Program-made: the position numbers and the translations under genes
The notes under the pieces: generated by a model
Database searches by the model: none
What the model was told of the DNA's origin: nothing
Seen by the model: the letters and a program-made list of their open reading frames with translations, nothing else
Assembly (NCBI RefSeq): GCF_000143415.4
Contig: NW_003314307.1
Coordinates: 832,378 to 896,377, forward strand
Source of the DNA: Selaginella moellendorffii
Lineage: Eukaryota; Plantae; Lycopodiophyta
DNA length: 64,000 nucleotides
Direction of reading: 5' to 3'
Shown: in pieces, positions 2,650-54,200 of the stretch
Numbering within the stretch: the first letter of the stretch is position 1
Layout: every line of letters begins with the position of its first letter

Positions 2650-3221
2650 GATCACATTACTGCGCTGCTTCCTTTGAGATAACATCCATCGCACGAGGAA
2701 AAAGCACGTGAGCAGCACCAAGATCGCAACCAAAACCAAGAGAAGAAGCTGGAGCAGCGACCACGGCGTCCTCCGAACCACTGTAACTACTGCTGCAGGT
2801 GTTGGTGTGGCCACTGCTGCGTCGTGACCGTCGCAACGATGGTGGTGGTGGGTGGTGGTGATTGTGGCGTCCTCCATGGTGGTGAACAACCAGAGGAGCT
2901 CCATCACCGTGATGATGATGGTACACTGCTGCTGCTGGAGCTGGATGGTGGTGGCAAGCATGATCAAGGATAGCAGGCGCTGGAGCTAGATGAGGAGGGT
3001 TGCCACGAGCAGGTGAACGAAAGCAGCTGGCGCTGGGGCTCGAACTGGAGTGTCACCTTGAAAGCTGGTGCTGGCTCGTGGCCTTGGTGTCCATGGTGGT
3101 GTGCTGGATGTGCTGGAGCTAGAGCTGGAGCTCGCGAGTGTGAAGCTCGGTGATGGCTGCCATGCCAGGGTGCTTGAGCTCGGTGGGCAAGTGTTGGGGC
3201 AGCGTGAGCGCGAGAGACCAT
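2650..3221 (-). pseudogene. His/Ala/Pro-rich membrane protein, copy 1 (frameshifted, 3' truncated)
   Basis: Split across ORFs 2964-3221, 2657-2926 and 2485-2967; after SNVIF it is fused by deletion to module P. Confidence 0.8.
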
Positions 3222-3588
3222 AACTTACCTCTTCGACAGGAGAAAAAATCCAAGCGAGAAAGAGGTAGTGAAAAAAAAATTATGAGTAGAGTCGAGAGCT
3301 CGTGACGCTGTGGATTGTTGGACTTATACTGAGCGCCCAAACCTAGATGTGAACAAATGTTTTTACTCGCTTTTTCAAATCTCTGGAAACTTAGCACTCA
3401 TTGAATGCGAGTCATGGAGCTCATAGAGACACAAGCCATCAGCATGCACAAAGTACAAAAAAAGTGGGAAGAAGAAACACAAGATAAATGTTTATCCATT
3501 GCTGTTTTTAGGTCTCACAGTGCAACATCCATCCAACACTAGTAAAATCGCTCAAAACGCCTGGAACGATCCAATAATCGAACATATT

Positions 3589-3661
3589 TGGAGATGCTGG
3601 GTATCGATCCCAGTGCCTCTCGTGTGCTAAGAGAACGCTCTACCAGCTGAGTTACATCCCC
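3589..3661 (-). pseudogene. tRNA-Ala(AGC) pseudogene
   Basis: 73-nt GGGGATG...CATCTCCA; D stem and anticodon stem disrupted. Confidence 0.85.
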
Positions 3662-3859
3662 TTAGCAAAGAAAGCACCATTCTAATACTCATCCTTGGAG
3701 ATTCTGGCATTTTTTGTTGCATTTCAAGAGCCTTTTGAGTGATGACCTTTGGAAAGACCACCATCTCCAGCAGGTTTCTATAGGAAAGCATCTGCATCTG
3801 CAGGCAACCATGAAGAATGTTACTAATGCTTATAATAATAGTAATAGTATTCACAAGAG

Positions 3860-6790
3860 GAGGACAAAAAGAGAGTGTTATTCAAGAGGATGAGTAAAGC
3901 AATTGGTAGAACCAACACAATATAAATCAATTATATGATCTTCAATAGCAATCAAATTGTATAAACACTAATATTATTTGGTATTTTGGTTTGCTAGTAA
4001 ACATATTTAGCTACATAATTGTATAGCTAAAAGTCTTTTAAATGAGTAACTTTTTTTTCTTACAAAATTTCAAAATTGGAAACATCACCTTTACATTCTT
4101 TCAAAGCTTAAATGCATTTTCTTTTGGTCTCTCATAGCCTCTGAACAAAAAAATAGAGATATTGGGCACGCTTGATTAATTCAAAGAAACTAATTACTAA
4201 AAGATTACTAGGTGACGAAACTTGTAAGTTGTAACAAGGAAATCAAGGAGTCATTTTAAAAATATTTTCGTAAACTAAAGAATATTTTCTAAAATTTTTA
4301 CTGGCAAACAGATATTTTAAACAAAATAGTAATTTAAATAATAACTAGATCTGACATTTTAGAGGTTTTTATTTGTGACCTAATTTGAATAATAAATTCA
4401 CAATATTTAGTATTTCTAAATATAAATTATTACTATAAAATTCCAATTTATATGTTAAAATTTATTTATAAATATATCAAATTCAAATAAAATTCTAATA
4501 ACTAGTTCTTCTCCAATATCTTTGATTCCTTTGACCATGCATTTGTAATGTTAAGGAACATTAATTTCTGTAGAAAAGTGAGATTGTTATTATAGTTGTA
4601 AAGTGTTCATTTCAAATTTAAACCCTATTTCAACTAAAGCATAAAACTCCAAATTCATCATTTTCACCCAAATAACTAAATATATGGTATATCTTCTGGT
4701 TTTTGGATAATTGACATTGCACAGACCATGTGTAGAACCTTCATAGGACATAACCATATGAATTGATCACATTGTTCTGGAGGATTCCCATGTTGTTTTC
4801 ATCAACAAAAACAATCAGTTAGAGTGTGTAAAGTTCATATAATAATTTTCTTACCACATAATATTTCTCCAATCCAAACAAAATATTTGGCTGTAGAACC
4901 TACTCTAGGTTGACATTAACCTCACTAAATCTCATGAATACTTTGTTCTTTGACTTGGCTTTTAATTGCTCAAAAGCATTGGTCCTTTGTGTTCTATAGT
5001 TACATACTCATGCTTGGGATGTGCAAGTTTTTGGATTGCATGGGCTCACTTACTCATTGTTTTCTTCTAATAGTTTTAAGGTTTTCAATTGGTTTTAATG
5101 CAAATTAAATTCCAACAGCATTTAAAGTTGATCCCATCACTTTGTGAGGTTGTGAATAAGAGGTTGTGTCAATGTTGTAGTAAATAAACATTCCACCAAA
5201 TCCTTAAAATTATATGTATTTTATTATAACTTAGCCTTTTATATAAGAGTGCATAAAAGTCTATTGTAAGATAGAGATGACCAAATCATTCTAGAAAGTT
5301 TTATATTAAAATATGCATTTAGAGAAACTTTTTTTTGATAGTGGGTAGCAAGTATTTTAAAACTCATTTAATAAAAAAAGAGAATTAATAAAGAAATCAA
5401 TGCTAGTAGTTCTTTATCTGAGAAATAATTAAAGCTTTTAAATGTAGAAAATGACTAAACCACCATACTAGCTAAGGTTTTAGTTCTAAACTTGTATTCC
5501 ATGTAAACATTATGTTCAACTTACTAAAATATATGAACTTGAATTACTTGTTTAAATCCTTTAAAGTGTTTGTACATTTTAAACTCTAGCATAACCAGTT
5601 GTGCTTATCATGGTATTCAACTTAAATGCATTTTCTATGTGTTCATGTAACTTTACTCTTAATGAAGAAGGCAACTCCTCTTTCAGATGATTAAACTTTA
5701 TTTATGTGACCATTACACATAATTCTAATACCTCAATGTTTTTGTGCTTTATTACTCATGAAACTATAAAGCATTTGTGGTGTTGAAAATTTTATTTCAA
5801 CTTGGTTTGTGTTGTTCAAAATAGAACTTAAAATGACATTTCTCTTAAACAACTATCACCATCAAGGATTATGCTCTATATAAAAGGATTTTTGAATAAA
5901 GAGAAATTAAATAAAGGAGTTCACAAAAATATTTTTATACACTAAAAAATATTCTATTAATGTTTTAGCTGTAATATATTTATTAAACAACTATTTTAAA
6001 AAATAGTAATTTAAGTATCTAATATTTATGGGCAATATTTGCTATTTGATCACCTAATTTAGAGAAGAAATTATTATTTTTAATATTTAATATTTATTAC
6101 TTATACTAATTATTAAAATTATACATCTATATTATGTTTTCATTACCTTTTTAGTGTAATTACAAGAAATGCCCTATATTTTTTTCAATGTAATTTATAG
6201 ATAAAATTTATTTTAATTTTAAATACAATATCAATATCTATTTTTTTCACCTCATATTCAGATGTTATAATGAATCCAAAGTTTAACAATTGGATCCATC
6301 CTATGTAAAGGATAAAATACTCTAGAATTTTAACATTTAAAGAATTATATGTAATTGCAACTTTGTTGTAAAGCTGTCTATTTACAGTGTCACGTCCATA
6401 ACTGAGAATCATATACTCATGATGATGGTATTGTTGCTTGATGTTGATCTTTTACTTTTAACTATAATGCCTTTGAGTATGTTGTTTTTGCTTCCTTTGA
6501 CCAAATATTTGTAATCTTCACATATTTGTTATTTCTCGTCTACTAATATGAAATCAAGAAAGATTTTAAAACTTGAATTGTAATTATAAAGTTTGTATAT
6601 ATGTACTGGGCATGGTTGAAGAAGAATATAACATCTAATCTACAATAAAATCTTGGAGAAAATTAAGTCCCATATATACTAATTAAAAAAATTCTATATA
6701 CTAAAAATACATTTGTGAATAGGCTTGTTTAGATTTAAAGTGACCAAACACTATAAATCTATAATTGGTTTGCTTAATCAAACCTAGCTA
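3860..6790. repeat. AT-rich repeats, subfamilies C and B in tandem; contains the empty Gypsy insertion site (CTAG-ATCT-GAC near 4348)
   Basis: Homologous to 19600-20265 plus 23766-26130, and to the inverted copies 44538-45200 and 37910-39943. Confidence 0.85.
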
Positions 6791-9700
6791 TCTATAATAA
6801 TAAGAACGAAGGGCCTAGACCCCCGCAGCTGTCCAATCACGGGCTCGGAAGCCATGGTTCTCAAGAAGGGGAGGCCACCCCAAGCCCAGGCCAAGGCCAG
6901 TGGCCATGGTTAACGGGAATATTGGCTCAATGTTGTGGCAGCCAATGGGCGGGATGCACATGTGGCCGTGAAAGGAAGAGGGCGTGGTGACAACTATTAT
7001 GCCATGCACTCCTAGGGCTCCATGGCTACTCTGCTCAGACAAGGTTGTGTGGGCATTCCCATGAGAGTCTGTGTGTCTGTAAGCTCCTAGAGGAGGTAAT
7101 AGGGGTGAGAAGAATGGTAGTTGGGCACACAATCTAGGTTCCTCTCGGGATCAACTCAAGACTGTGAGAGGCAAATTGGCTCATCTCCAACTCAACAAAG
7201 CTTTGATCCCTGTTCACCACTGCCTCAAGAGCTCTATAGCTTTGGCCTACAAGAAAGCAATTATCAAGGACACTCCCTCTTCATCCCCAGATTCTCTTGA
7301 GAAATCCCTTGCTGCTGGGCCTAGTGAGGCATTGTTGTTTCAGCACATGCTTGGGATCAACTCCGTTTGTAGGAACCAGGTGTTTCGAGTTGATGTAGGG
7401 CTGTCGAGTTACTGTGCCAGCCAACACTACTCCTGAAGTTTTGGAAATCTGACATGGCACTAATGTCTAGGTTCTCTCAAAAGAGAAGGAGAAGGAGAAG
7501 GTGCCACCACAGGCATCACCTGGTTTAGCTTCGTTTTTAGATCAAGGTAAGTTGTAAGTTTGGATATCTTTCTATTTTATGATGAGATTTTTTTTCTGTC
7601 CGATACTGCTTCGGTCAAATCTAAAATTTAGTTCCAGTTTCCGAGATTCCGAGGGCTGGTTTCAACAATGCGTGCTTATGGGCTTTCTCAGGTGTCTGGG
7701 ATGCTATGCTAGGTAACCTGATGCTAGCGTAGGAGCAACACTTGGGGCTGCAGCTCAAAATTGCAAAGCTGTGGATTATGAGGCAGAGATTGGTAAACAC
7801 AACATTGGAGTTATTACGTTGTTCTTGAGTGTGTTTCGCAAAAGTCTAATATTTCCCTTTCAGATCATTACATAGTTGTGAATTTTATATATTTCCAACT
7901 GTAGTCTGCATTTCTATTCTGCATAAACTTCTATACAAACTCAATTAAAAATATATATATAAAAGCTTCAAATCTATAATCAAACTGACGGAAAATGCCT
8001 CACCCTTGCCATCTTTTAAAGATTTAGATGCCTCTAAAACTATGATTGATCATGATACACATACTATAGCTGTTCAAAATAATCATGATAATGATTCTAT
8101 ACACCATAATATTAAAATTGGAGGTAATATAACTTGGTTATTCTGGCAACACATTGAAGAGTTTTCATCTTTAAAATGCAATGCATTACAAAAAATACAA
8201 ACAAATGATAAACTACCGATATTAAAATTTATAATGTTAAAGTCATTATAAATGCTATGGCTTGCTAGTGTGGTATTCATGGGTGGGAGTGGTGGATTTA
8301 ATATTGCTTATAATCATTATTATGATCACCTTTACCATTTGATATTAGACACTACAATAATGCTCTTGCTTTTGCATCTATGTCTTCTAATATTGATATT
8401 GTAAAAGCTCATGGTCCTTATTACTTTAAAATCCATGGTCAAATATATCATAATATTGTATCAACACATCCTTCTGAAGGTTAATATAAAACTTATGGAC
8501 AACTTTATATGCTTGATACTCTAGAAGCTATATATATAAGAAAGCAAAACCCTTTTAATTCAAGATGTAAGACAAACTTATTTAAACATCTTGATGCTCT
8601 CCTTCATCATGCTCAAGCTTTCAAAATGATGTATGAAATGGAACAAGAAGAAATTTGTTTTGCTACATTTTCAAGTTATCTTATATATGGTGTTTACATG
8701 TTATTAAAAACTGAAGGAACTGATCCATGATGATATAATGCTCCATGGACAAATGATGTTGTTGTTGTGTTTGTTAGTGATGATGGAGAACTACCACATA
8801 GTCGTGAAATTTGTATATATCCAATTGTAAGCAATTCTATATGTATCTCAACTCTTGATTATAATTGTGATCCTGTGGTTTACCCATTAATATTTCATTT
8901 TGGTGACAAAGGTTAGCACAAAAATATTTTTAATTCCGGATGTCGAATTAGATTACTCCAATATTATGCATACTATTTATCTATAAGAGACACAATACAC
9001 TTTTATTTTGATCAAATTTTACATGCAGGAAAACTCACACAATAATATATAGTTGATGCTTATGTAAAAGTTGAAAGCAATAATTTGAATTACTATTGCA
9101 CTCATCAGATAAAATTGCAAGTTGAAATGTATACTGGTCTTATGGATTATAATGCAAACTGTGCTACTAATGAAAATATAAATCCAGAAAAGATTTTTAT
9201 TTTACCTTCAAGTTTTGGGGGTGGCCCTAAAGCAATGCAACAAAATTATCAAAATGCAATGGCTATAGTTATTCATTTTTTAAAACCAGATCTTTTCATT
9301 ACTTTTACATGCAATTCCAAATGGCCACAAATTTCTAAATACTTACATCCAAATGAAGGCCTTGAAGATCATCCACGCTTGGTTTCTAGAGTATTTCATA
9401 TCAAGCTTAAAGAATTTTGAATGATATTACTAAAAAATATATTTTTGGAAATTGTATTCCTTTTATATATGTAATTGAATTTCAAAGGAGAGGCCTTCCA
9501 CATTGTCACTTTCTAGGGATTTTATCTCATGAAAACAAAATTAAAGACTGTGGTGCTATTAATCAATACATAATGGCACAATTGCTTAATCCTCAAGATG
9601 AACTTAAAATTTCTAAAATAACTACCTTTAATATGATACATGGTCCATGCAAGCCTCTTTACCCTAATACTCCTTGCATGGAAAATGGCATTTTCTCAAA

Positions 9701-12229
9701 AGGTTATCCAAAAAAATTTAATTATGAAACTACTTTTAGTGTTGATAGAAATCTAGATTATTATAGACCTGATAATGGCAACATAATTCTAAAAATTGGG
9801 TGCTATATTAATAATTATTGGGTAGTGCGCTATAATAAATAACTTTTAAAAAAATATAATGCTCATATTAATATTGAAATTTGTGCTACTATAAAAAGTA
9901 TTAAATATTTATTTCAATATGGTTATGATTGTGCTACAATTGAAATCCATTCGACAACCCAACAACTTAATAATATTTTAAATTGGGATGAAATCTCAAC
10001 TTTTTAAATACACATTATATATCTGCTCCAAAAGCAATATAGAGATTTTTTAAATTTAAAATGCATAACTATTCGACCCCTATAATCTGTCTTCCTATCC
10101 ATCTTTCAAATTTTCAAAACATCTATTTTATAAAGGGTTCTGAACAAATGGCACTTCAAAAAGCTTCTCAAAATGATACAATATTGACAAAATGGTTAGA
10201 ATTAAATATAAATGACCGAAATGCTAGATAATATATATATCTTGATACTGTCCTTTATATTATACATTTAACCTTCATACTCATAATTGGCAAATTTGAC
10301 ATACAACAAATGTCATGCCCCAAATGTATTATGTGTCTCCATCTAATGTTGAACTATATCATTTACATCTTATTTTACTCTATAAAAAAGGTGTTACATC
10401 TTTCAAAAATCTCTAAACAATTAACAATATTTATTATGACACATTTCAACAAGTTGTAAATGCAATGGGGCTTATATCTAATGATATCGAATGGGAAAAA
10501 TGTTTAGAAGATGCTTACTTTTTTAAAATGCTATCACAATTAAGACAATTATTTGTATTACTTTGTACCTTTTGCACTCCAAAAGATCCTTACTTTTTAT
10601 GGGATAAATTTAAAGACTTCCTTTCTAAGAATTTCATGCAAAAAAATCCAATTTTTCATTATGAATATGCTTTACATGATATAAATATTAAAATGAAAAT
10701 GCATGGCAAAATTAATCAAAATTACCATCTACCTTTCCTGTCTAAAAATTTTGATAATGAAAATAATGTCAACTCAACACAAATATATCAAAATGTTGAA
10801 CAAAATATTCCTTGATTTAATCAAGAATAGTTAAATATTTTTAATGATATTCTTAATGTTATTGATCACCCAACTAAGCATAATCAATAAATTCTCATTG
10901 ATGGCCTTGGTAGTATTGGTAAAACATTTTTTCTTAACACTCTTATAAATATTTTACAACTAAAAAAATAAATGTTGTTAGCATGGCTTGGATAGAAATT
11001 GCAAGTACTTTACTTTATAATAGCCAAACTTCACATGCTACTTTTATATTTCTTATTCCAATAAATGAAACATCAACTTTTATAACTACTAATAGTGAAG
11101 CAGGTATAAGAATCAAAACTATTAACGTATTGTTATGGGATGAAATAAGTATAGTTCACATTGATGCATTCACTGTTGTTGATCGAGTGTTGCGAGGCTT
11201 AAAAATACATCATTACCTTTTGGTGGCATAATTATTGTCACTAGTGGGGACTTTAAACAGACACTTTCAGTCATTCCACATGGACATAGGGCATAAATTG
11301 TTTCAAGTTTTATAAGAATGAATAAATTATAAAGATTATTTAGAAAATTATCTTTGAAAACAAATATGTGACTTGTTGAAAGTGATAAATCATAGGCTGA
11401 ATGGATTTTCAAAGTTGGAAATGGTGAAAATTTTCAAAATTTACCATCTTTACCTTCTAACTCCATTTTATTACCTCATATACAACTAATTTATTCATTT
11501 ATTATTGATTTTGTCTACCCTTTAGTACTTGATATTTCAAACCCTATCAAGTCATATTTACCCCACTTAATGATGAATATTTGCAATCAATAACACTATT
11601 GTATCTAAGGTGATACATATATCTACAAAAGTGTTGATTTTGTTGATACTAAACATCTTAAAAAATTTCCAATAGAATTCCTAAATTTTATCACACCTTT
11701 TGGTCTCTCACCATATAAACTCTCTCTCAAACAAGGTGCTATTCTTATCCTCCTAAGGAATATGCCTCCATCAGCAAAACTATGCAATGGCATATGTCTC
11801 ATCTTGAAAAATGCACTACCAAATGTTTTAGACTATGAAATTCTGATGGGGCAATTTAAAAGGACAAGAGTTTTTATCCCATGTATCGCACTAATACCAT
11901 CAAATACAAAAATTCCATTCAAAATGTTCAAAAGACAATTTCTAATTCTTTTAGGTTACTACTTAACAATCCCCAAATGCTAAGGATAGATATTTGACTG
12001 AGTTGGAGTTTACTTGCCCCCCCCCCTAGTTTTCATTCATGGGCAAATTTATGTGGCTTTATCAAGATACACATCACCACATGGCATTAGAATCAAAGTT
12101 CAAAACATCACACGCCAAGGCCACCTCTTTCCTTAAAATCCTTCTGTTTTTACAATTAACACTGTTTATAAAGAAGTTTTATATTAAACCTCTTTATAAA
12201 CCACCCAGCATTTGCTGGGCAAGTACTCA
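6791..12229 (+). mobile_element. Full-length degenerate autonomous-type Helitron
   Basis: 5' end A|TCTATAATAATAAG; 3' hairpin CCCAGC-ATTT-GCTGGG (12204-12219) followed by degenerate CTCA; RepHel coding remnants inside. Confidence 0.9.
7994..12185 (+). pseudogene. Helitron Rep/PIF1 helicase (RepHel) pseudogene
   Basis: PDLFITFTCNSKW, YVIEFQRRGLPHCH (HUH motif), NAHINIEIC..IKYLF, degenerate Walker A (GSIGKTF), WDEIS, PFGG..GDFKQTL, LCNG, HGQIYVALSR; many stops and frameshifts. The 5' boundary is approximate. Confidence 0.95.
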
Positions 12230-13005
12230 TCTATCACAATAAGGAGTTGCTGAAGTTGGGCACACAATCCAGACTCCTTTCGGGATCAACTTGCTTGCAA
12301 GCGGTGCATGAGCAGCACCACAGTCAGGGCTGGTGAGGGAGTGCACCATAAATGAAGAGCTGGGCTATGCTTGGGTGGAGCTGACTGGCACCATGGTAGC
12401 AGGTGTGGGTGATGCAAGGTATGCGAGTGACCAGATGGTGTGTGCAACCTGAAGGCGTCAAAGGAGTACTTTGAGCTGTCAAAGGAGGGGAAGCTGAAGA
12501 AGCTGAAATACACTGCCAGTGATCCTCCAGCATCCGCCCAAAGAGATTGAGAGCCGAGGCTACATCTCCTTGGTGGGAGTAGCTGGAGATGATTGCGTTC
12601 CAAGTTACAGCGTCACATCCTGTGCTGGCCACTGAGTTGAAAACTTCACAAGCTTCCACCATGCAGCCACACTGTCCGTAGAAGCCAAGAAGAGAGTTCA
12701 CAACAACCACCTCGGCTTCCATCTCGGCATGACAGATCTGCTGGTGGATGGCACTTCCAGTCTCCAGAGCCTTGGAGCTCCCACAGGCCTGGAGCGCAGT
12801 GGTGTAAGTTGGAGCATCAGGTACAAGGCCTTGGACTTGCTGCATCTGCAAGAAGAGATCCAGTGCAGCTGGTGCTTGCTCCGCCTGGATGTATCCGAGC
12901 ATCAGTGTTGTCCACGAGACAACATCGTGCCTCTCCATCCAGTCAAAAACTCTCCACACATCCACCTCTTTGTAAACCACCCAGCATTTGCTAGGCAAGT
13001 ACTTG
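12230..13005 (+). mobile_element. Non-autonomous mini-Helitron carrying a PPR fragment
   Basis: Starts TCTATCACAATAAG; 12257-12292 resembles 7119-7157; ends with the same ~39-nt terminus and hairpin (12965-13005) followed by T. Confidence 0.7.
12324..12998 (-). pseudogene. PLS-class PPR fragment (open 224-aa frame, about 3-4 motifs)
   Basis: WRVFDWMERHDVVSWTTLMLGY, PDAPTYTTALQACG, VVVNSLLGFYGQCG, DAVTWNAIISSY; the nominal start lies inside the Helitron terminus. Confidence 0.9.
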
Positions 13006-13208
13006 TATTCAAATATAGATTCTAGGATATTTTAATAACTAATAGTTGTTGTTCATTTATATTAATATTTTTATTTATAATTTATAATCTTCACTAAACA
13101 CTTTCTAGTATATTCTTGTTTATTCTACTATTGATATGGAATAATATTAATCTTGACTCCTATGTTTATAACCATTGATCAATTAAAATACTCAATGAAT
13201 GATACTAA

Positions 13209-13900
13209 CTATTGTCTCTCATATTTTTTATCCTTCACCATGGTGTGCCAGCTAAGACCCTTTTGCGTCTTTTCAGGTACCATGGGTTTCATGGACGGCT
13301 CCATCAACCTTGCATTCCTTGCAAAGTTTACCAACCTCCCAAGAAAAGCTTTTCTCTCATTGAGCAAGCATGCTGAGTAGTGGATTCCATCCAGATTTCT
13401 CTCCCAGATCTGTGAGTGGAGCCTCTTCTCTGCTAAGTCGCTGTGTGCCTTGAGCGCCACCATGAAAGTCTGAGCGTTTGGCTGGCTGGCTTGCTCATAG
13501 CACTCAAGAGTAAAGGTTGTTCTCAGCATATCCCAGGAAACGATGTTTTGCTGCTCCATGCAAAGTCTCAGCGTTTGGAGGCAGGCCAGCTTCTCGTTGC
13601 ATCTGATAGAAGACGTGCTGTTCGTGTTCCAGGCAACCAACGTCATGTTTATTTGTCCTCCTGAACACTTCTGATGCTTCCACATGTCCACGAGGCTGCT
13701 TGCGACGAATGCATCGGCTTTGTATTCACAATTTGCGAGGTAGACCAACCTATCCTGTTCTTCGTCCTATCCTGTTGAACAACCTGTGTTGCAAGCCGCA
13801 GTGTAGACTTTGACCATACTTTCACAATTGCACTTGCTTGATTCCCAGCTTGACTCTGGAGAAACTTATCTGGCTGCTATGCCCTGCACTGCTTCTTCTC
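13209..13900 (-). pseudogene. Decayed PPR fragment, module P
   Basis: DAFVASSLVDM, QPNAQTFMVALKA, RLHSQIWERNL. Confidence 0.6.
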
Positions 13901-17454: not shown

Positions 17455-17527
17455 TGGAGATGCTGGGTATCGATCCCGGTGCCTCTCGCATGCTAAGCAA
17501 ACGCTCTACCAGCTGAGCTACATCCCC
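17455..17527 (-). tRNA. tRNA-Ala(AGC), probably a pseudogene
   Basis: Full 73 nt; anticodon stem TTTGC/GCGAG has two G:U pairs; C-A mismatch in the T stem. Confidence 0.7.
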
Positions 17528-17740: not shown

Positions 17741-17995
17741 TTATTCAAGAGGATGAGTAAAGCAATTGGTAAAACCAACACGAAACTTGGTAGGTTCTTG
17801 CTCTATTTTCCAGTCCATGTTCCGAGCCAGCTGTGCAATAACTTCCAAGTCTGGTAGTTGACCCTTGTATGTGATCTTCACTGTCTGTGAGCAAGAGCCT
17901 GCTGTCTTCTTGCTCTGCAACTTAATCTCCTTGAAGATTGTTTGTACACAATCTTCCATGTGACAACGCATGCACTGTGCTGAGTTACATGTCAC
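17741..17995 (-). CDS. Small Cys-containing ORF, HMA-like (putative)
   Basis: CMRCHMEDCVQTIFKEI...TVKITYKGQLPDLEVIAQLARNMDWKIE; the tail after KFR is replaced by a repeat junction. Confidence 0.4.
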   Translation of the reverse strand: MTCNSAQCMRCHMEDCVQTIFKEIKLQSKKTAGSCSQTVKITYKGQLPDLEVIAQLARNMDWKIEQEPTKFRVGFTNCFTHPLE

Positions 17996-19268: not shown

Positions 19269-19306
19269 CTCAAAACACCTGGAACAATCAAATAATCAAA
19301 CATATT

Positions 19307-26390: not shown

Positions 26391-26393
26391 CCT

Positions 26394-42900: not shown

Positions 42901-44537
42901 CTTGAGATCACCCACATGCATAACTAGGTCCACCTCATCCCGTGCACATGCATATGTATGGCCGTTGCTATAAACAATGAAAATTGGCTCCACTACATGA
43001 CGCAAGTGTAAATGGTAACATGTGGCAATAGGTCAAGCAATAGAAGATAAACTTGAACCTATATCAACCAACATAGAGAGAATAATAGGAGATTGCTTGT
43101 TATAAAAATAAGTTTGGAAAGTAAACACTGGATGAATTGGTGCTGAATGAACCTTTTGATGATACTTCCGAAAGAAATATGAAAGGGTCACTAACTTATT
43201 CATGTAAGGTCCCTCTATTACTTGTGTAACTCCTTGTTTCCCAAATGCATCTCAGTGTCCAAACCTTCTATTACAGCAGCACCAATAAGATGTTGTTGAT
43301 GCCAAGGTGTCCACTCAGGAAATGGTGGCCACCAATTTGGAAAACACCGACAACGCTGATAAGTGTGACCAACTTCATCACACGCCCAACAACAAATACT
43401 ACGGCCTCGCCCTTGTCCTTGGATTTGAACAGTAGCAGCATCAACTTCCATTGGAACAAGACCATCACCCATAGAAAGTGAAGCTGAAGGATGTGACGCG
43501 AGAAGTGGAAGAGGCGACGTTTTATAATGTTGTGCCAAGCGAAGAGCATTATCAAGGGTGGCGGGAGCAAGTGTATGCATAAGTCTGACAAAATCTTGAT
43601 GAAGTGCTGGCTACAATATTCCTAGCTTGATCCGCTTCAACATATTTGGCTCCGCACGAAGTAAGAGGCTTCGGAAACGAATGTTAAATTGCATCACCAA
43701 CTTAGATGGCCCTTGACAAAGACGATGCAATTGTTGGAAAGCATCATCACAATTGTCAGCATGTTCGAATGTGTGTTTAAAGACGTTCAAGAGAATATTC
43801 CAATCCCCACAAGTGGCTGCGTTTAAACCATTATGCCACTACAATGCCATCCCTTAGAGACATGTGGAAAACTCATGCAAACATCAAGCATCATCCCAAG
43901 AATGATATATGGCAATCACCGTGAAGTGATCGAACCAATGGTACACATCATCCCCAAGATTCCCGCAAAAAAACTCCGGCTGAATACAAGGATCAGCACT
44001 AAAAACAAAAGGAGTTGTACTACATGCCATGAATGCCGCCATCAACTGAGTTTGGTTGTTCAATTGCAATCGCATAACATCAAACAATTGTACCAACTAC
44101 TATTCCAGAGTTAAAAGAGGAGGAGATTGCTAATCTACCATGAAAATGAACGAAAAGGAAAAAGCAAAAAAAGAGAGATGAAAAAAGGCTAGAAAGAAAG
44201 GAAGATCTAGACAATGCAAAAAGCTAGATCTTGAAAGGAAAGAATAAAAGAAAGGAAATGAAAAAGTTAGATCTAGATGATGCAAAAGTTATATCTAAAC
44301 CAAAAATCCCAAATTTAAACACTCCTCAAGGACAATCAAAGATGCCCCTCATCTCCACCAATGTGAGTGCATTAAATATAAAAAGGGAATACAGAAAATG
44401 TGCATATTAATTAACCCAAAAACCCTAGTTTATATACAAGAGCAAGTGGTCTGGATTGAAACTAATCTAACAGCTACCAAAATCCCACTATGCTAATATT
44501 AATATACGGCATTGTAGCCGTACACTTGGACCTCACA
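39944..44537 (-). mobile_element. Ty3/Gypsy LTR retrotransposon, more complete copy
   Basis: 5' LTR 44362-44537; PBS 44343-44360; gag with a CWACDEVGHTYQRC knuckle; protease; RT (FIDDVLIHS, LKLKQSKCVF); RNase H; integrase; PPT 40119-40131; 3' LTR 39944-40118; TSD ATCT. Confidence 0.95.
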
Positions 44538-45431
44538 AGATCTAGATATTATTTAAATTACTATTTTGTTTAAAATACATGTTTGACACTAAAACATTAA
44601 TAAAATATTCTTTAGTGTACCAAAATATTTTTAAAATATTCTTAATGACTCCTTTTGTTGACTTGGCTCTGTTTATTACCAGATCCACTTGAAAGTACAT
44701 TAAGTTGTACATTCTTGAGGTCAATAGGAAGGCATTGATTTCCTTGTTACAACTTACAAGTTCTAAAGGCATTAGTTTGGTTTTTAAACAAGATCCAGGT
44801 AGGCAACATGCTTAGAATACAAGAAATGGAGAGAGGCCACCTTGAAACAAAATCCATCACCTAGTAAGCTTTTAATAATTAGTTTTTTTGAATTGATCAA
44901 GTATGCCCAATATCTCTATTTGTTTGTTCAGAGGCTATGAGAGACCAAAAGCAAATGCATTTAAACTTTGAAAGAATGTAAAGGTAACGTTTCCAATTTT
45001 GAAATTTTGTAAGAAAAAAAAGTTACTCATTTTAAAAGACTTTTAGCTATACAATTATGTAGCTAAATATGTTTACTAGCAAACTAAAATACCAAATAAT
45101 ATTAGTGTTTATACAATTTGATTGCTACTGAAGATCATATAATTGATTTACATTCTGTTGGTTTTACCAATTTCTTTACTCATCCTCTTGAATAACACTC
45201 TCTTTTCGTCCTCCCTTGTGAATACTATTACTATTATATAAGCATTAGTAACATTCTTCATGGTTGCCTGCAGATGCAGATGCTTGCCTATAGAAACTTG
45301 CTGGAGATGGTGGTCTTTCCAAAGCTCATCACTCAAAAGGCTCTTGAAATGCAACAAAAGATGCCAGAATCTCCAAGGATGAGTAATAGAATGGTGAAGA
45401 GAAAAGATTAGCATTTTTGTTTCTTTGCTAA

Positions 45432-45504
45432 GGGGATGTAGCTCAGATGGTAGAGCGCTCGCTTAGCATGTGAGAGGCACCGGGATCGATACCCAGCATC
45501 TCCA
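45432..45504 (+). tRNA. tRNA-Ala(AGC), best-preserved copy
   Basis: Cloverleaf with G3:U70, intact D arm, TTAGCAT anticodon loop and ATCGATA T loop; one C-A mismatch in the T stem; first T4 run about 32 nt downstream. Confidence 0.8.
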
Positions 45505-46094
45505 AATATGTTCAATTATTTGATCATTCCAGGCATTTTGAGCGATTTTACTGGTGTTGACCTTTGGGGGAGCTATGGATGGATGTTGCACCGTGAGACC
45601 ATCAAAACAGCAATGGATAGACATTTATTTTGTTTTTCTTTTTCCCACTTTTTTGCAAAAGGAAGTAGTTTGTGCACGCTGATGGCTTGTGTCTCCATGA
45701 GCTCCATGACTTGCATTCAATGAGTGCCAAGTTTTCAGAGGTTTGAAAAACACGTAAAAAAGTTTCATTCACTACTTTAGAATTAAATTGCCATCAAATT
45801 AAAATTGTTTTCACTTTTGGAAATATTTGTACCTAGAGCATTTCGTGATTGTGAGATTAAATCGCTATTCACATCTAGGTTTGGGCTCTTTGGCATGCTC
45901 AAGCCCGATGGCACCCTTGCTGACAATCCACAGCGTCACCAGCTCTCGAGTCCACTCGTTTTTTTTTTCACAAAGCCAAAAGTACCTCTTTATTTTTTCT
46001 AAGTCAAGGGTTAGGTTATAATCTTTCTCGCTTGGATTTTTCTATTGTAGAAGCTCTCGTCAGGTAAGCTGGCTCTCGCGCTCACACCGCCCCA

Positions 46095-46790
46095 ATGCTT
46101 GTCCGCCGAGCTCAAGCGCCCTGGCATGGCGGCCATCACCGAGCTTCACACCCGCGAGCTCCAGCTCTAGCTCCAGCACATCCAGCACACCACCATGGAC
46201 ACCAAGGCCACGAGCCAGCGCCAGCTTTAGCTCCAGTTCTTCAAGGTGATGCTCCAGATCGAGCCCCAGTGCCAGCTGCTTTCGTTCACCCTGCTCACGG
46301 CTACCCTGCTCATCTAGCTCCAGCGCCTGCTATCCTCGATCATGCTCGCCACCACCATCCAGCTCCAGCAGCAGCAGTGTACCATCATCATCACGGTGAT
46401 GGAGCTCCTCTGGTTGTTCACCACCATCACCATGGTCACCACCATGGTCACCACCATGGAGGACGCCACAACCACCACCACCACCACCACCACCATCGTC
46501 ACGACGGTCACAATGCAGCAGTGGCCACACCAACACCCGCAGCAGTAGTTACAGTGGTTCGGAGGACACCGTGGTCGCTGCTCCAGTTTCTTCTCTGGGT
46601 TTTGGTTGCGATCTTGGTGCTGCTCGCGTGCTTTTTGCTTGTGCGATGGATGTTATCTCGAAGGAAGCAGCGCAGTAATGTGATCTTTCAGGATCCCGGG
46701 TGGCAGATCGAAGTTGTGGTGGACGATCCTCCGACTGAGAAGAAACAGCTGGAAGCTCACACTCGTGGTTCGCACAGCATGGCACTCTAG
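46095..46790 (+). CDS. His/Ala/Pro-rich membrane protein, copy 5
   Basis: 231-aa ORF; first ATG lost; a 1-nt deletion near the 3' end shifts it into the HMA-like frame, ending at TAG. Confidence 0.55.
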   Translation: MLVRRAQAPWHGGHHRASHPRAPALAPAHPAHHHGHQGHEPAPALAPVLQGDAPDRAPVPAAFVHPAHGYPAHLAPAPAILDHARHHHPAPAAAVYHHHHGDGAPLVVHHHHHGHHHGHHHGGRHNHHHHHHHHRHDGHNAAVATPTPAAVVTVVRRTPWSLLQFLLWVLVAILVLLACFLLVRWMLSRRKQRSNVIFQDPGWQIEVVVDDPPTEKKQLEAHTRGSHSMAL

Positions 46791-47269
46791 GATTCTCCTC
46801 AAAGTGTCCTGCCAACACTGGCAGTGACGCGTAACTCAGCACAGTGCATGCGTTGTCACATGGAAGATTGTGTACAAACAATCTTCAAGGAGATGAAGTT
46901 GCAGAGCAAGAAGACAGCAGGCTCTTGCTCACGGACAGTGAAGATCACATAACCAGACTTGGAAGTTATTGCACAGCTGGCTCAGAACATGGACTGGAAA
47001 ATAGAGCAAGAACCTACCAAGTTTCGATTTGACTGAGCTATCCTCTAGAGTGACGGGGGAGCAGACGTCAGTGCACCTCCAAAGGCCAGAGAAGTTGCTT
47101 GAGACGAAAGGTTTGAGAAAAGGTAACGTAGTACTTTTGCTCTCTGTTCTTGCAGGCGCTCAAAGCTCAACTTCGATGAGAAGACGCAGTGCAGGGCATA
47201 GCAGCCAGATAAGTTTCTCCAGAGTTAAGCCGGGAATCAAGCAAGTGCACTTGTGAAAGTATGGTCGAA

Positions 47270-47850
47270 GTCTACACTGCGGCTTGCAACACAGGTTGTT
47301 CAACAGGATGGGACGAAGAACAGGATAGGTTGGTTTTCCTCGCAAATTGTGAATACAAAGCCGATGCATTCGTCACAAGCAGCCTCGTGGACATGTGGAA
47401 GCATCAGAAGTGTTCAGGAGGACAAATAACATGACGTTGGCTGCCTGGAACACGATCATCATGGGACAGCACGTCTTCTATCAGATGCAACGAGAAGCTG
47501 GCCTGCCTCCAAACGCTGAGACTTTGCATGGAGTAGCAAAACATCGTTTCCTGGGATACAACCTTTGCTCTTGAGTGCTATGAGCAAGCCAGCAGCCAAA
47601 CGCTCAGACTTTCATGGTGGCGCTCAAGGCACACAGCGACTTAGCAGAGAAGAGGCTCCACTCACAGATCTGGGAGCGAAATCTGGATGGAATCCACTAC
47701 TCAGCATGCTTGCTCAATGAGAGAAAAGCTTTTCTCGGGAGGTTGGTAAACTTTGCAAGGAATGCAAGGTTGATGGAGCCGTCCATGAAACCCAAACAAA
47801 GATGGTACCTGAAAAGACGCAAAAGGGTCTTAGCTGGCACACCATGGTGA
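47270..47850 (+). pseudogene. Decayed PPR fragment, module P
   Basis: Inverted copy of 26394-27000. Confidence 0.6.
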
Positions 47851-48178
47851 AGGATAAAAAATATGAGAGACAATACTTAATATCATTCATTGAGTATTTT
47901 AATTGATCAATGGTTATAAACATATTTATAATTTATGAGTCAAGATTAATATTATTCCATATCAATAGTAGAATAAACAAGAATACACTAGAAAGTGTTT
48001 AGGAAAGATTATAAATTATAAATAAAAATATTAATCTATGCGTCATTGACACACTATGTGCGAGCGAGTTTGTTTTCAGCATGCCTTTCAAGCCAGACTC
48101 GGTGGACCTGAGCTCGATTCATCAACTGTTGTAAGAGATCGAGTGGATCGATCTAAGAGTTTATCGAAGAGCTTTTAG

Positions 48179-49970: not shown

Positions 49971-49979
49971 AAGTCATAT

Positions 49980-50510
49980 CTACAACAGAGTGACTAGATG
50001 GTGTGTGCAACCTAAAAGCATCAAAGGAGGGGAAGCTGAAGTACATTGCCAGTGATCCTCCAGCTTCCGCTCAAAGAGCCTGAAAGCTGAGGCTACATCT
50101 CCCTGGTGGTAGTAGCTGAAGATGATTGCATTCCAAGTTACAGCGTTGCGTCCCGCGCTGGCCATGGCCGCTGAGTTGAAAACTTCGCAAGATTCCACCA
50201 CGCAGCCACACCGTCCGTAGAAGCCCAGCAGAGAGTTCACAACGACCACCTCGGCTTCCATCTCGGCATGACAGATCTGCTGGTGGATGGCACTTCAAGT
50301 CTCCAGAGCCTTGGAGCTCCCACAGGCCTGGAGCACAGCAGTGTAAGTTGGAGTGTCGGGTACTAGGCCTTGGACTTGCTGCATCTGCGAGAAGAGATCC
50401 AGTGTAGTTGGTGATTGCTCCGCCTGGATGTATCCGAGCATCAGTGTTGTCCACGAGACAACATCGTGCCTCTCCATCCGGTCGAAAACTCTCCATGCAT
50501 CCACCTCTTT
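49980..50510 (-). pseudogene. PPR fragment, frameshifted copy of 12420-12970
   Basis: High similarity and same downstream flank (TATTCAAATATAGATTCTAGG); the Helitron hairpin is lost. Confidence 0.9.
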
Positions 50511-50572
50511 TTAAAATTCGTATTCAAATATAGATTCTAGGATATTTTAATAGCTAATAGTTGTTGTTCATT

Positions 50573-51720
50573 GCTATGGAGTTTCTTACTGGACACCACG
50601 AAGAAATGCGAGCTTAGGCAGCTAAAGCATCGACGAGCAGCATCAACGTGGCCGGATCGACTGCAAGCCAGCAAGATCGAGACAAAAGAGCTCTCATCTG
50701 GCCGTAAACCATCACAACTCATCGAGCTCAAGATCTGGAACGCTCTTTACGAGCAAAGGCTAGCGCTCTGGGATTGAGCGCAACAGGCCAGGAGAGAGTT
50801 CACACTGAGACGTCAGCCAAAACTAAGAATTCGCTCGTCTTTCTCGAAAGGTGGCGATGGCATTCTTTGCGAGAAAACGTAGAAGCCATGACACTCCACG
50901 CAACGAAGTTTCTCTCCGGCATGGAGTGAAAGATCGAGGCAGCGTTTCAAACGAATCCATTGCGCGCGTATCTGTTGAGCATAGCGGTCCAGGAAACCAA
51001 GCTCGCCTCCTCCATCGCCGGGAAGATCTCCTCGGCCTTGGACAGATGCCCGTTTTGGGCATACGCTGCGAGCATCGCTGTGCAGGCGATGAGATTCCAC
51101 TCGGCCATGGCACGAAAGAAGAAATCCTCGGCGCTCGCCAGATCTGAATCTTGGATGTAAGCCGAGAGCATCTAATTCCAGGAAGAATCGATCTTGGCGG
51201 GCATGGAATCAAATAGCTTTCTCGCTTCGACGGCATGCCCGCGCTGGGCATACACGGTGATCATCGCGTTCCAACACACCTCGTCCCGGACGGGGGTAGA
51301 ATCAAAGAGAAACCGCGCCGATTCCAAATCCCCGAGGCCCGAGCGAGCGTGTGGATCATGGTAGTGATCGTGATGGCGTCGTGCTCCGGCATGGCGGCGA
51401 AGAGGATACGTACGCGGCACAGATGCCCTCTCTTGGCATACGCGTCCAGCATCGCATTGCAAGAGACGAGGTCGCGGTTGGGCATCTGGGCGAAGAAGAG
51501 CTCTGCCACTTTGATCGCCTCTTCTCCCTCCATTTCCCCTGCCACCAAGAATGCCGAGAGCATTGTGTAAGGAGACGAGGCTCCTCTCGGGCATGGAATC
51601 GAAATGGGATTTGGTAGCAGCCAAATGCCTAGCTGTGGCATATGCGGCAAGCATTCCATTCCACGCAATCAAATCCCACTCTGGCATTGATTGAAAGACT
51701 ATCTGGGCTTGATTGATTAA
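50573..51720 (-). pseudogene. PLS-class PPR pseudogene rich in short (S-type) motifs
   Basis: MPEWDLIAWNGMLAAYA, MPNRDLVSCNAMLDAYAKRG, RDEVCWNAMITVYAQRG, PDESSFVSILLACSRSG; several frameshifts. Confidence 0.9.
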
Positions 51721-52429
51721 TTTTTTTTCGGGCGAGATTGCACACATGAAGTCATATCCATTTTTCCCGTGCATAAATTTTATAAATTGTACATGTGGGA
51801 CAACAATGCATTATAAATCTCTTCGGTATATAAAAATGTCAGAGAGCAAGACGAAAATTTAAATAAAAAACAATTACCATTAGTCTAGCAAACAATTTTC
51901 GCTAAGTTACAGGCAGGGTAAATTCATCTTATTGAGACCTAAAGTAAGCTTTGGCTTGCAAAAGACTCAAGCACTTAGTCTGCAATTATATAAAAGACCA
52001 ATCACCATAGATCTCATATTGTCTCGGCATATATAACGTAATTGTCTTTAATATTTGACCATGATGTGCCACCTAAGATCCTTTTGCTTGTTTTCACGAA
52101 CCATCTTTGTTTGGGTTTGGTTGACAGCTCTGTCAACCTTGTATTACACTATTTCTTCATTTTTCTCGAAAATTTTACTGGAGAAAACCTTTTCTCTCAT
52201 TTTTTATTAAGTTCTTCATATCCATAAAATTGGCCTTCAGTGATAGTTTTGACGCAGCACTCCTAGTTCTCAGGCAACTCCCAAACACCTAAATTGGAAG
52301 TATGATAAATACCTTCCAAGGTGAGATGTGCAAAAGACCTAATACCTTCTCCACATTAAAATTGCATCTTGTGAAAACAAAAAAGCTATGAACTAGTGAA
52401 AAAAACTTAGAGTACTTGTGAACATCAGT

Positions 52430-53010
52430 TCTCAGATGCTTCGTAAGGTGCTCTCCAATTACTCCAAATGAGTAGTGCAAGAAGAAGTGTGTCATCGTGA
52501 CAGTGACACTAGAGTACTTCTGAACTTGGGGTGGAAAACTTCTTGAGCGGCAGGCATGTCTCCACACTGAGCGAGCATGTGAGTATGGATTCCGCTCTCC
52601 CAGATCTGCAAGTGGGGCTATTCTCTGCTAAGTCGCCACGTGCCTTGAGCGCCACCATGAAAAGTTTGAGCGTTTGGCTGCCGGTTTGCTCATAGCACTC
52701 AAGAGCAAAGGTTGTTCTTGGCATATCCCAGGAAACGATGTTTTGCTGCTCCATGCAAAGTCTCAGCGTTTGGAGGCAGGCCAGCTTCTCATTGCATCTG
52801 ATAGAAGACGTGCATGTTCGTGTTCCAGGCAACCAACGTCATGTTTCTTTGTCCTCCTGAACACTTCTGATGGTTCCACAGTCCACGAGGCTGCTTGGGA
52901 CGAATACATACGGCTTTGTATTCACAATTTGCGAGGTAGACCAACCTATCCTGTTCTTCGTCCCATCCTGTTGAACAACCTGTGTTGCAAGCCGCAGTGT
53001 AGACTTCGAC
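52430..53010 (-). pseudogene. Decayed PPR fragment, module P
   Basis: Closely matches 2080-2645. Confidence 0.6.
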
Positions 53011-53429
53011 CATACTTTCACAATTGCACTTCCTTGATTACCGGCTTGACTCTGGAGAAACTTATCTGGCTGCTATGCCCTGCACTGCTTCTTCTCATCA
53101 AAATTGAGATTTGAGCGCCTGCAAGAACAGAGAGCAAAAGTAGTACGTTACCTTTTCCCAAACCTTTCGTCTCAAGCAACTTCTCTGGCCTTTGGATGTG
53201 CACTAACGTCCGCCTCTAGAGCATAGCTCAGTCAAATCGAAACTTGGTAGGTTCTTGCTCTATTTTCCAGTCCATGTTCCAAGCCAGCTGTGCAATAACT
53301 TCCAAGTCTGGTTATGTGATCTTCACTGTCCGTGAGCAAGAGCCTGCTGTCTTCTTGCTCTGCAACTTCATCTCCTTGAAGATTGTTTGTACACAATCTT
53401 CCATGTGACAACGCATGCACTGTGCTGAG

Positions 53430-54200
53430 TTATGCGTCACTGCCAGTGTTGGCAGGACACTTTGAGGAGAATCCTAGAGTGCCATTGTTGTGCGAACCAC
53501 GAGTGTGAGCTTCCAGCTGTTTCTTCTCAGTCGGAGGATCGTCCACCACAACTTCGATCTGCCACCCGGGATCCTGAAAGATCACATTACTGCGCTGCTT
53601 CCTTCGAGATAACATCCATCGCATGAGCAAAAAGCACGCAAGCAGCACCAAGATCGCAACCAAAACCCAGAGAAGAAACTGGAGCAGCGACCACGGCGTC
53701 CTCCGAACCACTGTAACTACTGCTGCGGGTGTTGGTGTGGCCACTGCTGCGTCGTGACCGTCGCGACGATGGTGGTGGTGGTGGTGGTGGTGGTGGTGGT
53801 TGTGGCGTCCTCCATGGTGGTGACCATGGTGATGTTGGTGAACAACCAGAGGAGCTCCATCACCGTGATGATGATGGTACACTGCTGCTGCTGGAGCTGG
53901 ATGGTGGTGGCGAGCATGATCGAGGATAGCAGGTGCTGGAGCTAGATGAGCAGGGTGGCCGTGAGCAGGGTGAACGAAATCAGCTGGCGCTGGAGCTCGA
54001 TCTGGAGCGTCACCTTGAAGAACTGGAGCGTCACCTTGAAGAACTGGAGCTAAAGCTGGCACTGGCTCGTGGCTTTGGTGTCCATGGTGGTGTGCTGGAT
54101 GTGCTGGAGCTTGCAGGTGTGAAGCTCGGTGATGGCCGCCATGCCAGGGCACTTGAGCTGGGCGGGCAAGCATTGGGGCGGCGTGAGCGCGAGAGACCAT
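53430..54200 (-). CDS. His/Ala/Pro-rich single-pass membrane protein, copy 6 (complete ATG to stop, 256 aa)
   Basis: Ungapped ORF with an in-frame 21-bp duplication (APVLQGD x2), H9 tract and TM; the downstream HMA-like ORF has a 12-bp deletion that creates TAA. Confidence 0.7.
   Translation of the reverse strand: MVSRAHAAPMLARPAQVPWHGGHHRASHLQAPAHPAHHHGHQSHEPVPALAPVLQGDAPVLQGDAPDRAPAPADFVHPAHGHPAHLAPAPAILDHARHHHPAPAAAVYHHHHGDGAPLVVHQHHHGHHHGGRHNHHHHHHHHHHRRDGHDAAVATPTPAAVVTVVRRTPWSLLQFLLWVLVAILVLLACFLLMRWMLSRRKQRSNVIFQDPGWQIEVVVDDPPTEKKQLEAHTRGSHNNGTLGFSSKCPANTGSDA

Follow-up and report, generated by a model that had tools for sequence, protein, structure and literature searches.

A histidine-rich hydroxyproline-rich glycoprotein (HRGP)/AGP of maize, reportedly described by Kieliszewski and colleagues in 1992, is secreted. 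The His-rich open reading frame (ORF) considered here recurs along a 64,000-nucleotide stretch of Selaginella moellendorffii DNA (the window). It resembles the maize protein in composition only, by setting His among Ala-Pro repeats; unlike it, the predicted product lacks a signal peptide, combines a transmembrane helix with a tail of cytosolic type, reaches a Pro+Ala+Ser+Thr (PAST) content of 31.6%, and is unrelated in sequence to any entry of the databases searched. Classical AGPs, by criteria said to have been set out by Schultz and colleagues in 2002, combine a signal peptide, a PAST content of at least about 50%, clustered non-contiguous Pro glycomotifs (AP, SP, TP), a C-terminal GPI-anchor signal in which a hydrophobic end follows small residues at the omega site, and Hyp-O-arabinogalactan with Yariv reactivity. 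The ORF has 11 AP and 14 PA dipeptides in common with them, but neither their signal peptide, nor their PAST content, nor a GPI-type C-terminus.

Segmentally duplicated pseudogenes and orphan ORFs in transposon-rich plant DNA provide another comparison. Here, too, flanks are collinear over multiple kb, a secondary transposon insertion is common to copies, substitutions follow a neutral spectrum marked by CpG decay, frameshifts are scattered, and there are indications of gene conversion. Unlike such pseudogenes, the His-rich ORF has no known progenitor or homologue, and "pseudogene" is a label that we infer. In Selaginella lepidophylla, GingerRoot elements and Pack-MULEs carry gene fragments (PMC6839031). 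Both cases place GC-rich, host-derived pieces in repeated, gene-poor Selaginella DNA, whereas the present one concerns another species and other elements (Helitron and Ty3/gypsy), and the His-rich block appears to have neither bounding transposon termini nor an identifiable parental gene.

Copies of the frame and the block that carries them

A tblastn search of the whole window with c6 as query detects six His/Ala/Pro-rich copies (c1-c6) of an intronless ORF of ~256 codons (Table 1). The final 2.26 kb of the window (61739-63998) is 96.7% identical to 34331-36575, so a seventh start codon is expected just beyond the window's end. The original prediction of six copies of ~250 residues plus the upstream region of a seventh holds as an inventory, since all were found by tblastn or paralogy; it does not hold for their completeness, as c6 alone is read throughout and open. 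Two further copies have small frame-breaking changes, one is both truncated and frameshifted, and two meet N gaps, so that three of the four fully read copies (c1, c2, and c5) are damaged. The consensus frame of the copies, taken as ancestral, is open across 256 codons. Gap flanks are collinear with paralogues, and the N-run lengths equal the paralogous stretches to the base. An apparent 322-aa ORF running through the c3 gap is an artefact, because the gap replaces the stretch that holds the stop codon in every other copy.

Table 1. Positions of the ORF copies, duplicated segments, modules, transposons and assembly gaps in the window
Feature	Position	Strand	Remarks
c1	2647-3221	-	Older copy; across three frames; truncated at codon 208 by block breakpoint
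c2	17991-18744	-	2-bp deletion near codon ~29; remainder open
c3	27744-28189	-	N-terminal 149 codons; C-terminal half and stop inside 363-N gap
c4	36670-37410	+	Open either side of 187-N gap; in frame at nominal gap length; 62 middle codons unread
c5	46074-46831	+	First ATG gone; 1-bp deletion 18 codons 5' of stop; remnant is a 231-codon ORF from second Met (46095-46790)
c6	53430-54200	-	256 codons plus stop; sole copy both fully read and intact
Seventh copy, upstream region	63494-63998	+	Window stops ~95 bp short of expected ATG
Inverted duplication, left arm	17781-29595		Carries c2 and c3; 86-96% identical to 35274-47026
Inverted duplication, right arm	35274-47026		Carries c4 and c5
Direct duplicate of 28558-36575	56060-63998		Offset ~27.45 kb
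tRNA-Ala(AGC)	45432-45504	+	On c5's strand, upstream of c5
tRNA-Ala sister copy	55143-55215	-	
tRNA-Ala sister copy	17455-17527	-	
tRNA-Ala sister copy	3589-3661	-	Weaker
D module (frameshifted PPR pseudogene fragment)	47177-48038	+	On the ORF's strand, downstream
D module sister copies	26204-27084, 13017-13901, 52565-53097, 2203-2647		
Ty3/gypsy element 1, degenerate	20266-23765	+	~176-bp LTRs (TG..CA); ATCT on both flanks; PBS at 20443, PPT at 23640-23650
Ty3/gypsy element 2	39944-44537	-	In other palindrome arm; shares insertion site and target duplication with element 1
Helitron Rep domain	9085-9842		
Helitron 5' block, three copies	6051-8873, 31987-34895, 60063-62303		Abut the unit
363-N gap	27381-27743		Equals c2 17935-18297 and c6 53380-53742
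187-N gap	36802-36988		Equals c5 46212-46398 and c3 27859-28045
136-N gap	30726-30861		Equals 14684-14819

What was duplicated is a multi-kb block comprising the tRNA-Ala gene, the PPR pseudogene fragment, and transposon pieces, ordered on one strand with the tRNA upstream of the His-rich ORF and the PPR fragment downstream. Direct and inverted collinear matches around the copies extend 8-12 kb, and the direct duplicate is 96.5-97.8% identical except beside the gap at 59137-60062 (89%). Expansion in copy number, originally read as a property of the gene, is thus that of the whole block rather than of the ORF alone. On its left side the block ends raggedly (26163, 26204, 26385, and 26552 in c3 coordinates), which fits breakage and does not fit transposon termini. 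A PPR fragment shares 92% identity with an annotated S. moellendorffii protein. The tRNA-Ala module is not a SINE, as the tRNA lies 254 nt within a ~430-bp module and not at its 5' end, and a frame of 85 codons immediately 3' of the ORF (37367-37621), which by eye resembled a heavy-metal-associated domain, returned nothing from Pfam or PDB.

The balance of evidence tips towards the ORF being a passenger of the duplicated block, its copies not kept for protein function. An orphan frame, a tRNA-Ala gene, and a PPR fragment make up a composite block of about 5.6 kb, and it is this block, not the ORF, that segmental duplication, both tandem and inverted, has amplified at least sevenfold within DNA rich in Helitron and gypsy elements. 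Thereafter the copies would have diverged in the manner of repeat DNA that is free of constraint and probably methylated: CpG decayed to TpG, CAC/CAT and 12- to 21-bp repeats slipped, small frameshifts arose, and gene conversion acted patchily between copies. That one is still open would reflect the youth of the duplications (about 3% divergence). Features of a passenger ORF are present, including collinear homology far past the ORF, common secondary insertions, disabling mutations, and a neutral pattern, the verdict of neutrality resting on the limited power of about 73 changes. The frame may originally have been that of a small host gene, as suggested by its abrupt GC-rich start at the ATG, its place between two host genes, and its open consensus. 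A passenger matters little. It adds another orphan frame to those copied together with adjacent sequence in repeat-rich DNA, and serves as a warning that an open frame in stop-poor sequence plus copy number does not equal a gene family.

Openness of the frame

The N-terminal 165 codons of the ORF are of low complexity, with a (CCA/CAC)12 tract and tandem units of 9, 12, and 21 bp, and these repeats differ in length from copy to copy. For example, c6 contains a perfect 21-bp tandem duplication at 54002-54050; it also differs from the other copies by a V-to-M change. Such features favor a second explanation, in which the ORF was never a gene and is a chance frame in which expanded simple repeats with few stop codons (CAC/CAT runs and units resembling GCTCCAGC) adjoin a 100-codon stretch open by chance. 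Dinucleotide shuffles of the ORF already have a longest open stretch of 150 codons on average, and the other frames of the real sequence are open for 59-110 codons. The 10 synonymous to 25 non-synonymous changes of the N-terminal part and the failure of searches to find relatives (see below) are also consistent with a chance frame. However, just 1.9% of shuffles are open end to end, an unusual degree of openness, out of the ordinary though not overwhelmingly so. Moreover, the charge-flanked hydrophobic helix and the non-repetitive tail look protein-like, and the place between tRNA and PPR genes, together with an AT-rich upstream region that gives way abruptly to GC-rich sequence at the ATG, fits a small host gene. 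An origin as a chance frame is unlikely.

Selection and the predicted product

Substitutions were counted as distinct changes among c2-c6, with c1 compared separately with the consensus. The 49 changes among c2-c6 comprise 17 synonymous, 31 non-synonymous, and 1 stop, in line with the neutral expectation of 31.4/65.6/3.0% (binomial p = 0.36). Most are transitions (40/49), 28 of the 49 fall at CpG, and variable sites are spread over the codon positions as 14/16/19 (p = 0.68). Pairwise NG86 omega ranges from 0.41 to 1.52, and the 24 changes of c1 are distributed 9/6/9 by codon position with an omega of 0.74. The ratio among copies is indistinguishable from 1, half of what the original prediction had named as counting against it, although ~73 changes in all bound omega to roughly 0.5-1.6 only, a range that a weakly constrained disordered protein could still occupy. 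The TM-plus-tail third, which in c6 lies at 53433-53753 on the minus strand, has 7 synonymous and 7 non-synonymous changes (omega about 0.46, n = 14), a hint of mild constraint on that part.

Comparison with the surrounding DNA also speaks for neutrality. Counting substitutions only, the ORF diverges by 3.3-3.9%, downstream non-ORF sequence by 2.5%, the PPR fragment by 4.5%, and the upstream modules by 6.7-7.6%; indel events number 6.2 per kb in the ORF and 7.5 and 7.1 in its flanks. The ORF is not conserved above its non-coding flanks. The impression that it stays largely intact while neighboring modules break does not survive this comparison, as its divergence lies within the 2.5-7.6% of the flanks, or the tally of damaged copies given above. 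Groupings by informative sites are mutually incompatible. A point against the passenger reading is that indels in the ORF are mostly multiples of three (12, 21, 6, 9, 12, and 30 bp), though all of these fall within trinucleotide or tandem repeats, in which slippage yields threes anyway.

The predicted c6 product displays the expected AP/PA runs, His tracts, single hydrophobic segment (residues ~170-195), and subsequent basic SRRKQR segment. A structure model contains one helix (172-202), with a mean pLDDT below 60 in all other 10-residue blocks. Taken together, these predictions support the proposal that the product, if translated, has a single membrane helix with a basic stretch after it. The c6 protein would then begin with ~170 disordered His/Ala/Pro-rich residues, cross the membrane once as a helix, and end in a tail of ~60 residues, and by analogy with any 10-His tract it would certainly chelate Ni, Zn, or Cu in vitro. 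Its assignment as a cell-surface AGP-like glycoprotein fares worse. The composition is 17.2% His, 14.5% Ala, 10.2% Pro, 3.9% Ser, and 3.1% Thr, and the AP and PA dipeptides, with 3 TP and 0 SP, have His residues between them and occur only at residues ~30-105. The N-terminus is not signal-peptide-like and lacks a hydrophobic core: among 9-residue windows that begin within residues 1-25, the most hydrophobic averages 0.58 on the Kyte-Doolittle scale, and the conserved 400 bp upstream reveal no exon with a signal peptide. The last 60 residues are hydrophilic and the sole hydrophobic segment is internal, leaving no GPI-type C-terminal signal.

That the ORF belongs to no known family is borne out by several searches. 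Pfam-A yields no match above its curated threshold, the only hit being DUF350 on the transmembrane helix (21.6 bits vs a 26-bit cut-off), and protein word searches with the ORF find no relative. A full HMMER search of 1.84 billion protein representatives returns a lone, repetitive match, P0001; this tandem-repeat artefact of 1071 residues aligns over 10 short stretches and is rejected as a homologue. Also rejected are PDB matches in which residues ~133-151 align to residues 2-19 of recombinant chains, positions that suggest purification His-tags at chain N-termini. Exact look-up of six window ORFs in a 15-billion-protein collection finds none of them, and the annotated S. moellendorffii proteome, within the collections searched, holds no homologue of the ORF. 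Little weight attaches to its absence from annotated proteomes, since repeat masking would keep gene callers from seeing an ORF present in many copies.

Under a third explanation, the lineage has a working family of its own of His-rich surface proteins, single-pass and possibly glycosylated, several copies of which were kept for metal binding. One copy is intact and initiation at internal Met codons would let two others make the greater part of the protein, the transmembrane helix and basic stretch are convincing as predictions, the start codon, with its purine at -3 and G at +4, heads the GC-rich stretch, and both the shuffle test (p about 0.02) and the even ratio in the TM-plus-tail third lean in its favor. 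Against these stand neutral substitution and codon-position patterns, conservation no better than that of the flanks, damage to most fully read copies, the missing AGP features and homologues, and a block duplication that accounts for the amplification. Such a family is quite improbable. A narrower variant is likewise doubtful: c6 (perhaps with c2, c4, and c5) might be a young Selaginella-specific orphan gene, repeat-born and supplied with a membrane anchor, whose disordered poly-His protein buffers or senses transition metals under weak constraint (omega about 0.5), mainly on the helix and tail. Expression of c6, if it occurs, would make a neat lycophyte example of a membrane protein that arose from repeats within one lineage and bears a natural poly-His metal site; it would concern researchers of de novo genes more than those of cell walls or metal homeostasis.

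Transposons of the window

It is very unlikely that a transposon (Helitron or long LTR), rather than segmental duplication, captured and spread a host gene fragment: the window has a Helitron Rep domain, three Helitron 5' blocks adjoin the unit, gene-fragment-carrying transposons are documented in another Selaginella species (PMC6839031), and direct pairs of copies 9.4 kb apart flank gag-pol, but the ORF block is not a long LTR, as it lies outside a secondary gypsy insertion that has its own LTRs, PBS, PPT, target duplication, and empty-site paralogue, the block ends share no terminus and no TG..CA, several units lie away from the Helitron block, and captured genes are antisense to Rep. A fragment captured by a Helitron would lie between a 5' TC end and a 3' CTRR end with a hairpin; the features seen here are adjacency to a Helitron block and ragged block ends. 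The two gypsy insertions, one in each palindrome arm, occupy an identical site and agree in their ATCT target duplication, TG..CA LTRs, PBS, and PPT, and the c1 unit keeps the empty site; a single insertion was therefore copied with the block.

Copies of the reading frame and their duplicated block

The His/Ala/Pro-rich reading frame of about 256 codons (ORF) is a real repeated frame. It was probably multiplied passively, as part of a composite block of about 5-6 kb, and its copies are decaying in a neutral manner. The ancestral frame may have served as a small host gene, with a tRNA gene on one side and a PPR gene on the other; no result of this sequence analysis shows a present function of any copy. 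A tblastn search with the intact copy as query returns c1 to c6, the six copies claimed in the original prediction. Each sequence feature described there is also present: AP/PA runs, His tracts, the hydrophobic segment and the SRRKQR stretch. The description of the copies as largely intact was generous: this holds for c6, but c1, c2 and c5 are damaged and c3 and c4 are gapped. At the end of the window, a stretch of 2.26 kb matches 34331-36575 with 96.7% identity, so that a seventh copy is expected to start about 95 bp past the window end.

The ORF is never found alone. A tRNA-Ala gene lies 370-940 bp upstream on its own strand, and on the 3' side, on the same strand, come roughly 350 bp of conserved sequence outside the ORF and then a frameshifted PPR fragment. 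The block lies in turn within the larger inverted and direct repeats listed in the table. On the left it ends raggedly, with no terminus common to its copies. An 85-codon frame at 37367-37621 (+), also seen at 46791-46949 and 53315-53473, overlaps the 3' end of the ORF in a different frame and lies where the block is most conserved (divergence 2.5%). Its c5 and c6 versions are disrupted by a deletion of 17 bp, and the 37367-37621 frame matched neither a family nor a structure.

Informative sites back mutually incompatible groupings. The C module, an AT-rich module upstream of the ORF, divides the copies into {c2, c5, c6} and {c3, c4}, with 3-4% divergence inside a subfamily and 9-10% between subfamilies, but the ORF lacks such a split. 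Together these patterns are signs of gene conversion, of homoplasy at CpG sites, or of the two combined; the absence of the split from the ORF suggests that gene conversion homogenised the GC-rich core.

Coordinates of repeated features in the window
Feature	Position	Strand	Remarks
ORF c1	2647-3221	-	three frames occupied; cut at codon 208
ORF c2	17991-18744	-	2-bp deletion near codon 29
ORF c3	27744-28189	-	N-terminal 149 codons, then gap
ORF c4	36670-37410	+	gap mid-copy
ORF c5	46074-46831	+	first ATG lost; 1-bp deletion 18 codons 5' of stop
ORF c6	53430-54200	-	intact, 256 codons
tRNA-Ala(AGC) genes	45432-45504, 55143-55215, 17455-17527, 3589-3661
C module, {c2, c5, c6}	19694-20201, 44602-45109, 55541-56048
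C module, {c3, c4}	29178-29586, 35348-35691
Inverted duplication	17.8-29.6 kb vs 47.0-35.3 kb		86-96% identity
Direct repeat	28.6-36.6 vs 56.1-64.0 kb		offset about 27.45 kb; 96.5-97.8%; 89% beside 59137-60062 gap
Direct repeat	0-4.3 kb vs 14.7-19.9 kb
Gypsy element	20266-23765	+
Gypsy element	39944-44537	-
363 N	27381-27743		paralogous intervals: c2 17935-18297, c6 53380-53742
187 N	36802-36988		paralogous intervals: c5 46212-46398, c3 27859-28045
136 N	30726-30861		paralogous interval: 14684-14819
Helitron Rep domain	9085-9842	+	Helitron_like_N, E = 2.6e-27
Helitron 5' block, three copies	6051-8873, 31987-34895, 60063-62303
Helitron-related interval	34402-34950	+	side observation

Constraint, chance openness and predicted product

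Substitutions among c2-c6 resemble those of a neutral sequence. The 49 distinct changes comprise 17 synonymous, 31 non-synonymous and one stop-type (at the c2 frameshift site), against a neutral expectation of 31.4/65.6/3.0% (p = 0.36); 40 are transitions and 28 fall at CpG. Variable sites are spread 14/16/19 over codon positions 1/2/3 (p = 0.68), and the older copy c1 differs from the consensus by 24 changes (9/6/9 per codon position, omega 0.74). Indel events per kb number 6.2 in the ORF versus 7.5 and 7.1 in its flanks, values treated here as equal. Counting substitutions alone, the ORF copies diverge by 3.3-3.9%, compared with 2.5% for the adjoining downstream non-ORF sequence, 4.5% for the PPR fragment and 6.7-7.6% for the upstream sequence. 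The third of the ORF encoding the transmembrane segment and tail holds seven synonymous and seven non-synonymous changes, counts too few to interpret. Pairwise omega between copies ranges from 0.41 to 1.52. With all these results combined, omega is about 0.9, within a rough interval of 0.5-1.6. Strong purifying selection is excluded; weak constraint may still operate.

Openness by chance is unlikely. The ORF is stop-poor at 57% GC, and its N-terminal two thirds consist of simple repeats (a 12-unit trinucleotide tract and tandem units of 9, 12 and 21 bp). Only 1.9% of dinucleotide shuffles stay open over the full length; across the shuffles, the longest open stretch averages 150 codons. In the real sequence, the remaining five frames reach 59-110 codons.

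Searches for relatives of the product yielded little. Pfam gave solely a sub-threshold transmembrane match (DUF350, 21.6 bits vs a 26-bit cut-off), no relatives emerged from word searches using either the full-length protein or residues 150-256, and among the 1.84 billion representatives scanned in a full HMMER search the sole match was a repetitive artefact (E = 3.7e-5). PDB matches were set aside as resembling His-tags. The searched collections include the S. moellendorffii proteome, so the frame is unannotated there; this is weak evidence against a gene, because repeat masking could account for the missing annotation. AlphaFold2 without an alignment predicts one confident helix (172-202), with mean pLDDT below 60 in all other 10-residue blocks, and hydropathy agrees with a single helix. 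The proposed AGP-like character fails on three of four criteria checked: hydropathy reveals no signal-peptide-like N-terminus, PAST is 31.6% (His, 17.2%), and the C-terminus is hydrophilic. For the fourth, the glycomotifs, AP, PA and TP dipeptides occur (11, 14 and 3, with no SP), but they alternate with His and are limited to residues ~30-105.

Gypsy insertion and assembly gaps

Because ORF copies form direct pairs 9.4 kb apart flanking gag-pol, the block was considered as a long LTR. This reading is ruled out by the gypsy element's own LTRs of about 176 bp with TG..CA ends, a primer-binding site two bases past the 5' LTR, a purine tract 5' of the 3' LTR, an ATCT target duplication on both flanks, and an empty insertion site retained in the c1 unit. 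The identical insertion and site in both palindrome arms indicate one insertion, later copied along with the block; the sharing reflects segmental duplication, not independent transposition. The primer-binding site (20443-20458 (+), 44345-44360 (-)) matches the complement of the tRNA-Ala(AGC) 3' end plus CCA, perfectly over the first 11 bases and at 14/16 overall, which marks the element as one primed by tRNA-Ala rather than initiator tRNA-Met, located beside copies of the primer's gene. That tRNA is encoded in the same block, 0.9-3 kb away.

The 363-, 187- and 136-N runs have both flanks collinear with paralogues and match the paralogous interval in length to the base. In this they resemble sequence whose length is known but which has been masked or left unresolved; such exactness is odd for gap sizes described as merely estimated. 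A fourth run, 59137-60062 (926 N), has no exact match, its paralogous interval being 894 bases. At the nominal length of the 187-N gap, c4 is in frame, with 62 of its codons unread. A 322-codon frame across the c3 gap is an ORF-calling artefact, because the stop codon of all other copies falls within the stretch that the gap replaces.

Other features of the window

At about 26% GC, the window consists of AT-rich DNA interspersed with GC-rich islands. It contains PLS-type PPR fragments, Ty3 gag and reverse transcriptase, together with a Helitron Rep domain and four tRNA-Ala(AGC) genes. The PPR fragment at 12327-12998 has 92% identity to an NCBI protein from Selaginella moellendorffii, and the following matches are from the same species; the window is accordingly read as nuclear DNA of this lycophyte. 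The PPR reading frames at 12324-12998 (-) and 50021-51774 (-), with identity to annotated S. moellendorffii PPR proteins reaching 92%, could have arisen as pseudogene copies of the annotated genes, or could represent those genes on another haplotype. The Helitron 5' block occurs three times. Its first copy alone extends into Rep, and the spacer of the large palindrome holds the truncated one at 32-35 kb. Between a tRNA-Ala gene and c6 lies a 124-bp tandem array (54551-55049 / 54597-55088; 4 units, 86% matches), which includes a 250-bp unit present twice at 100% identity, pointing either to a duplication of very recent date or to an effect of the assembly.
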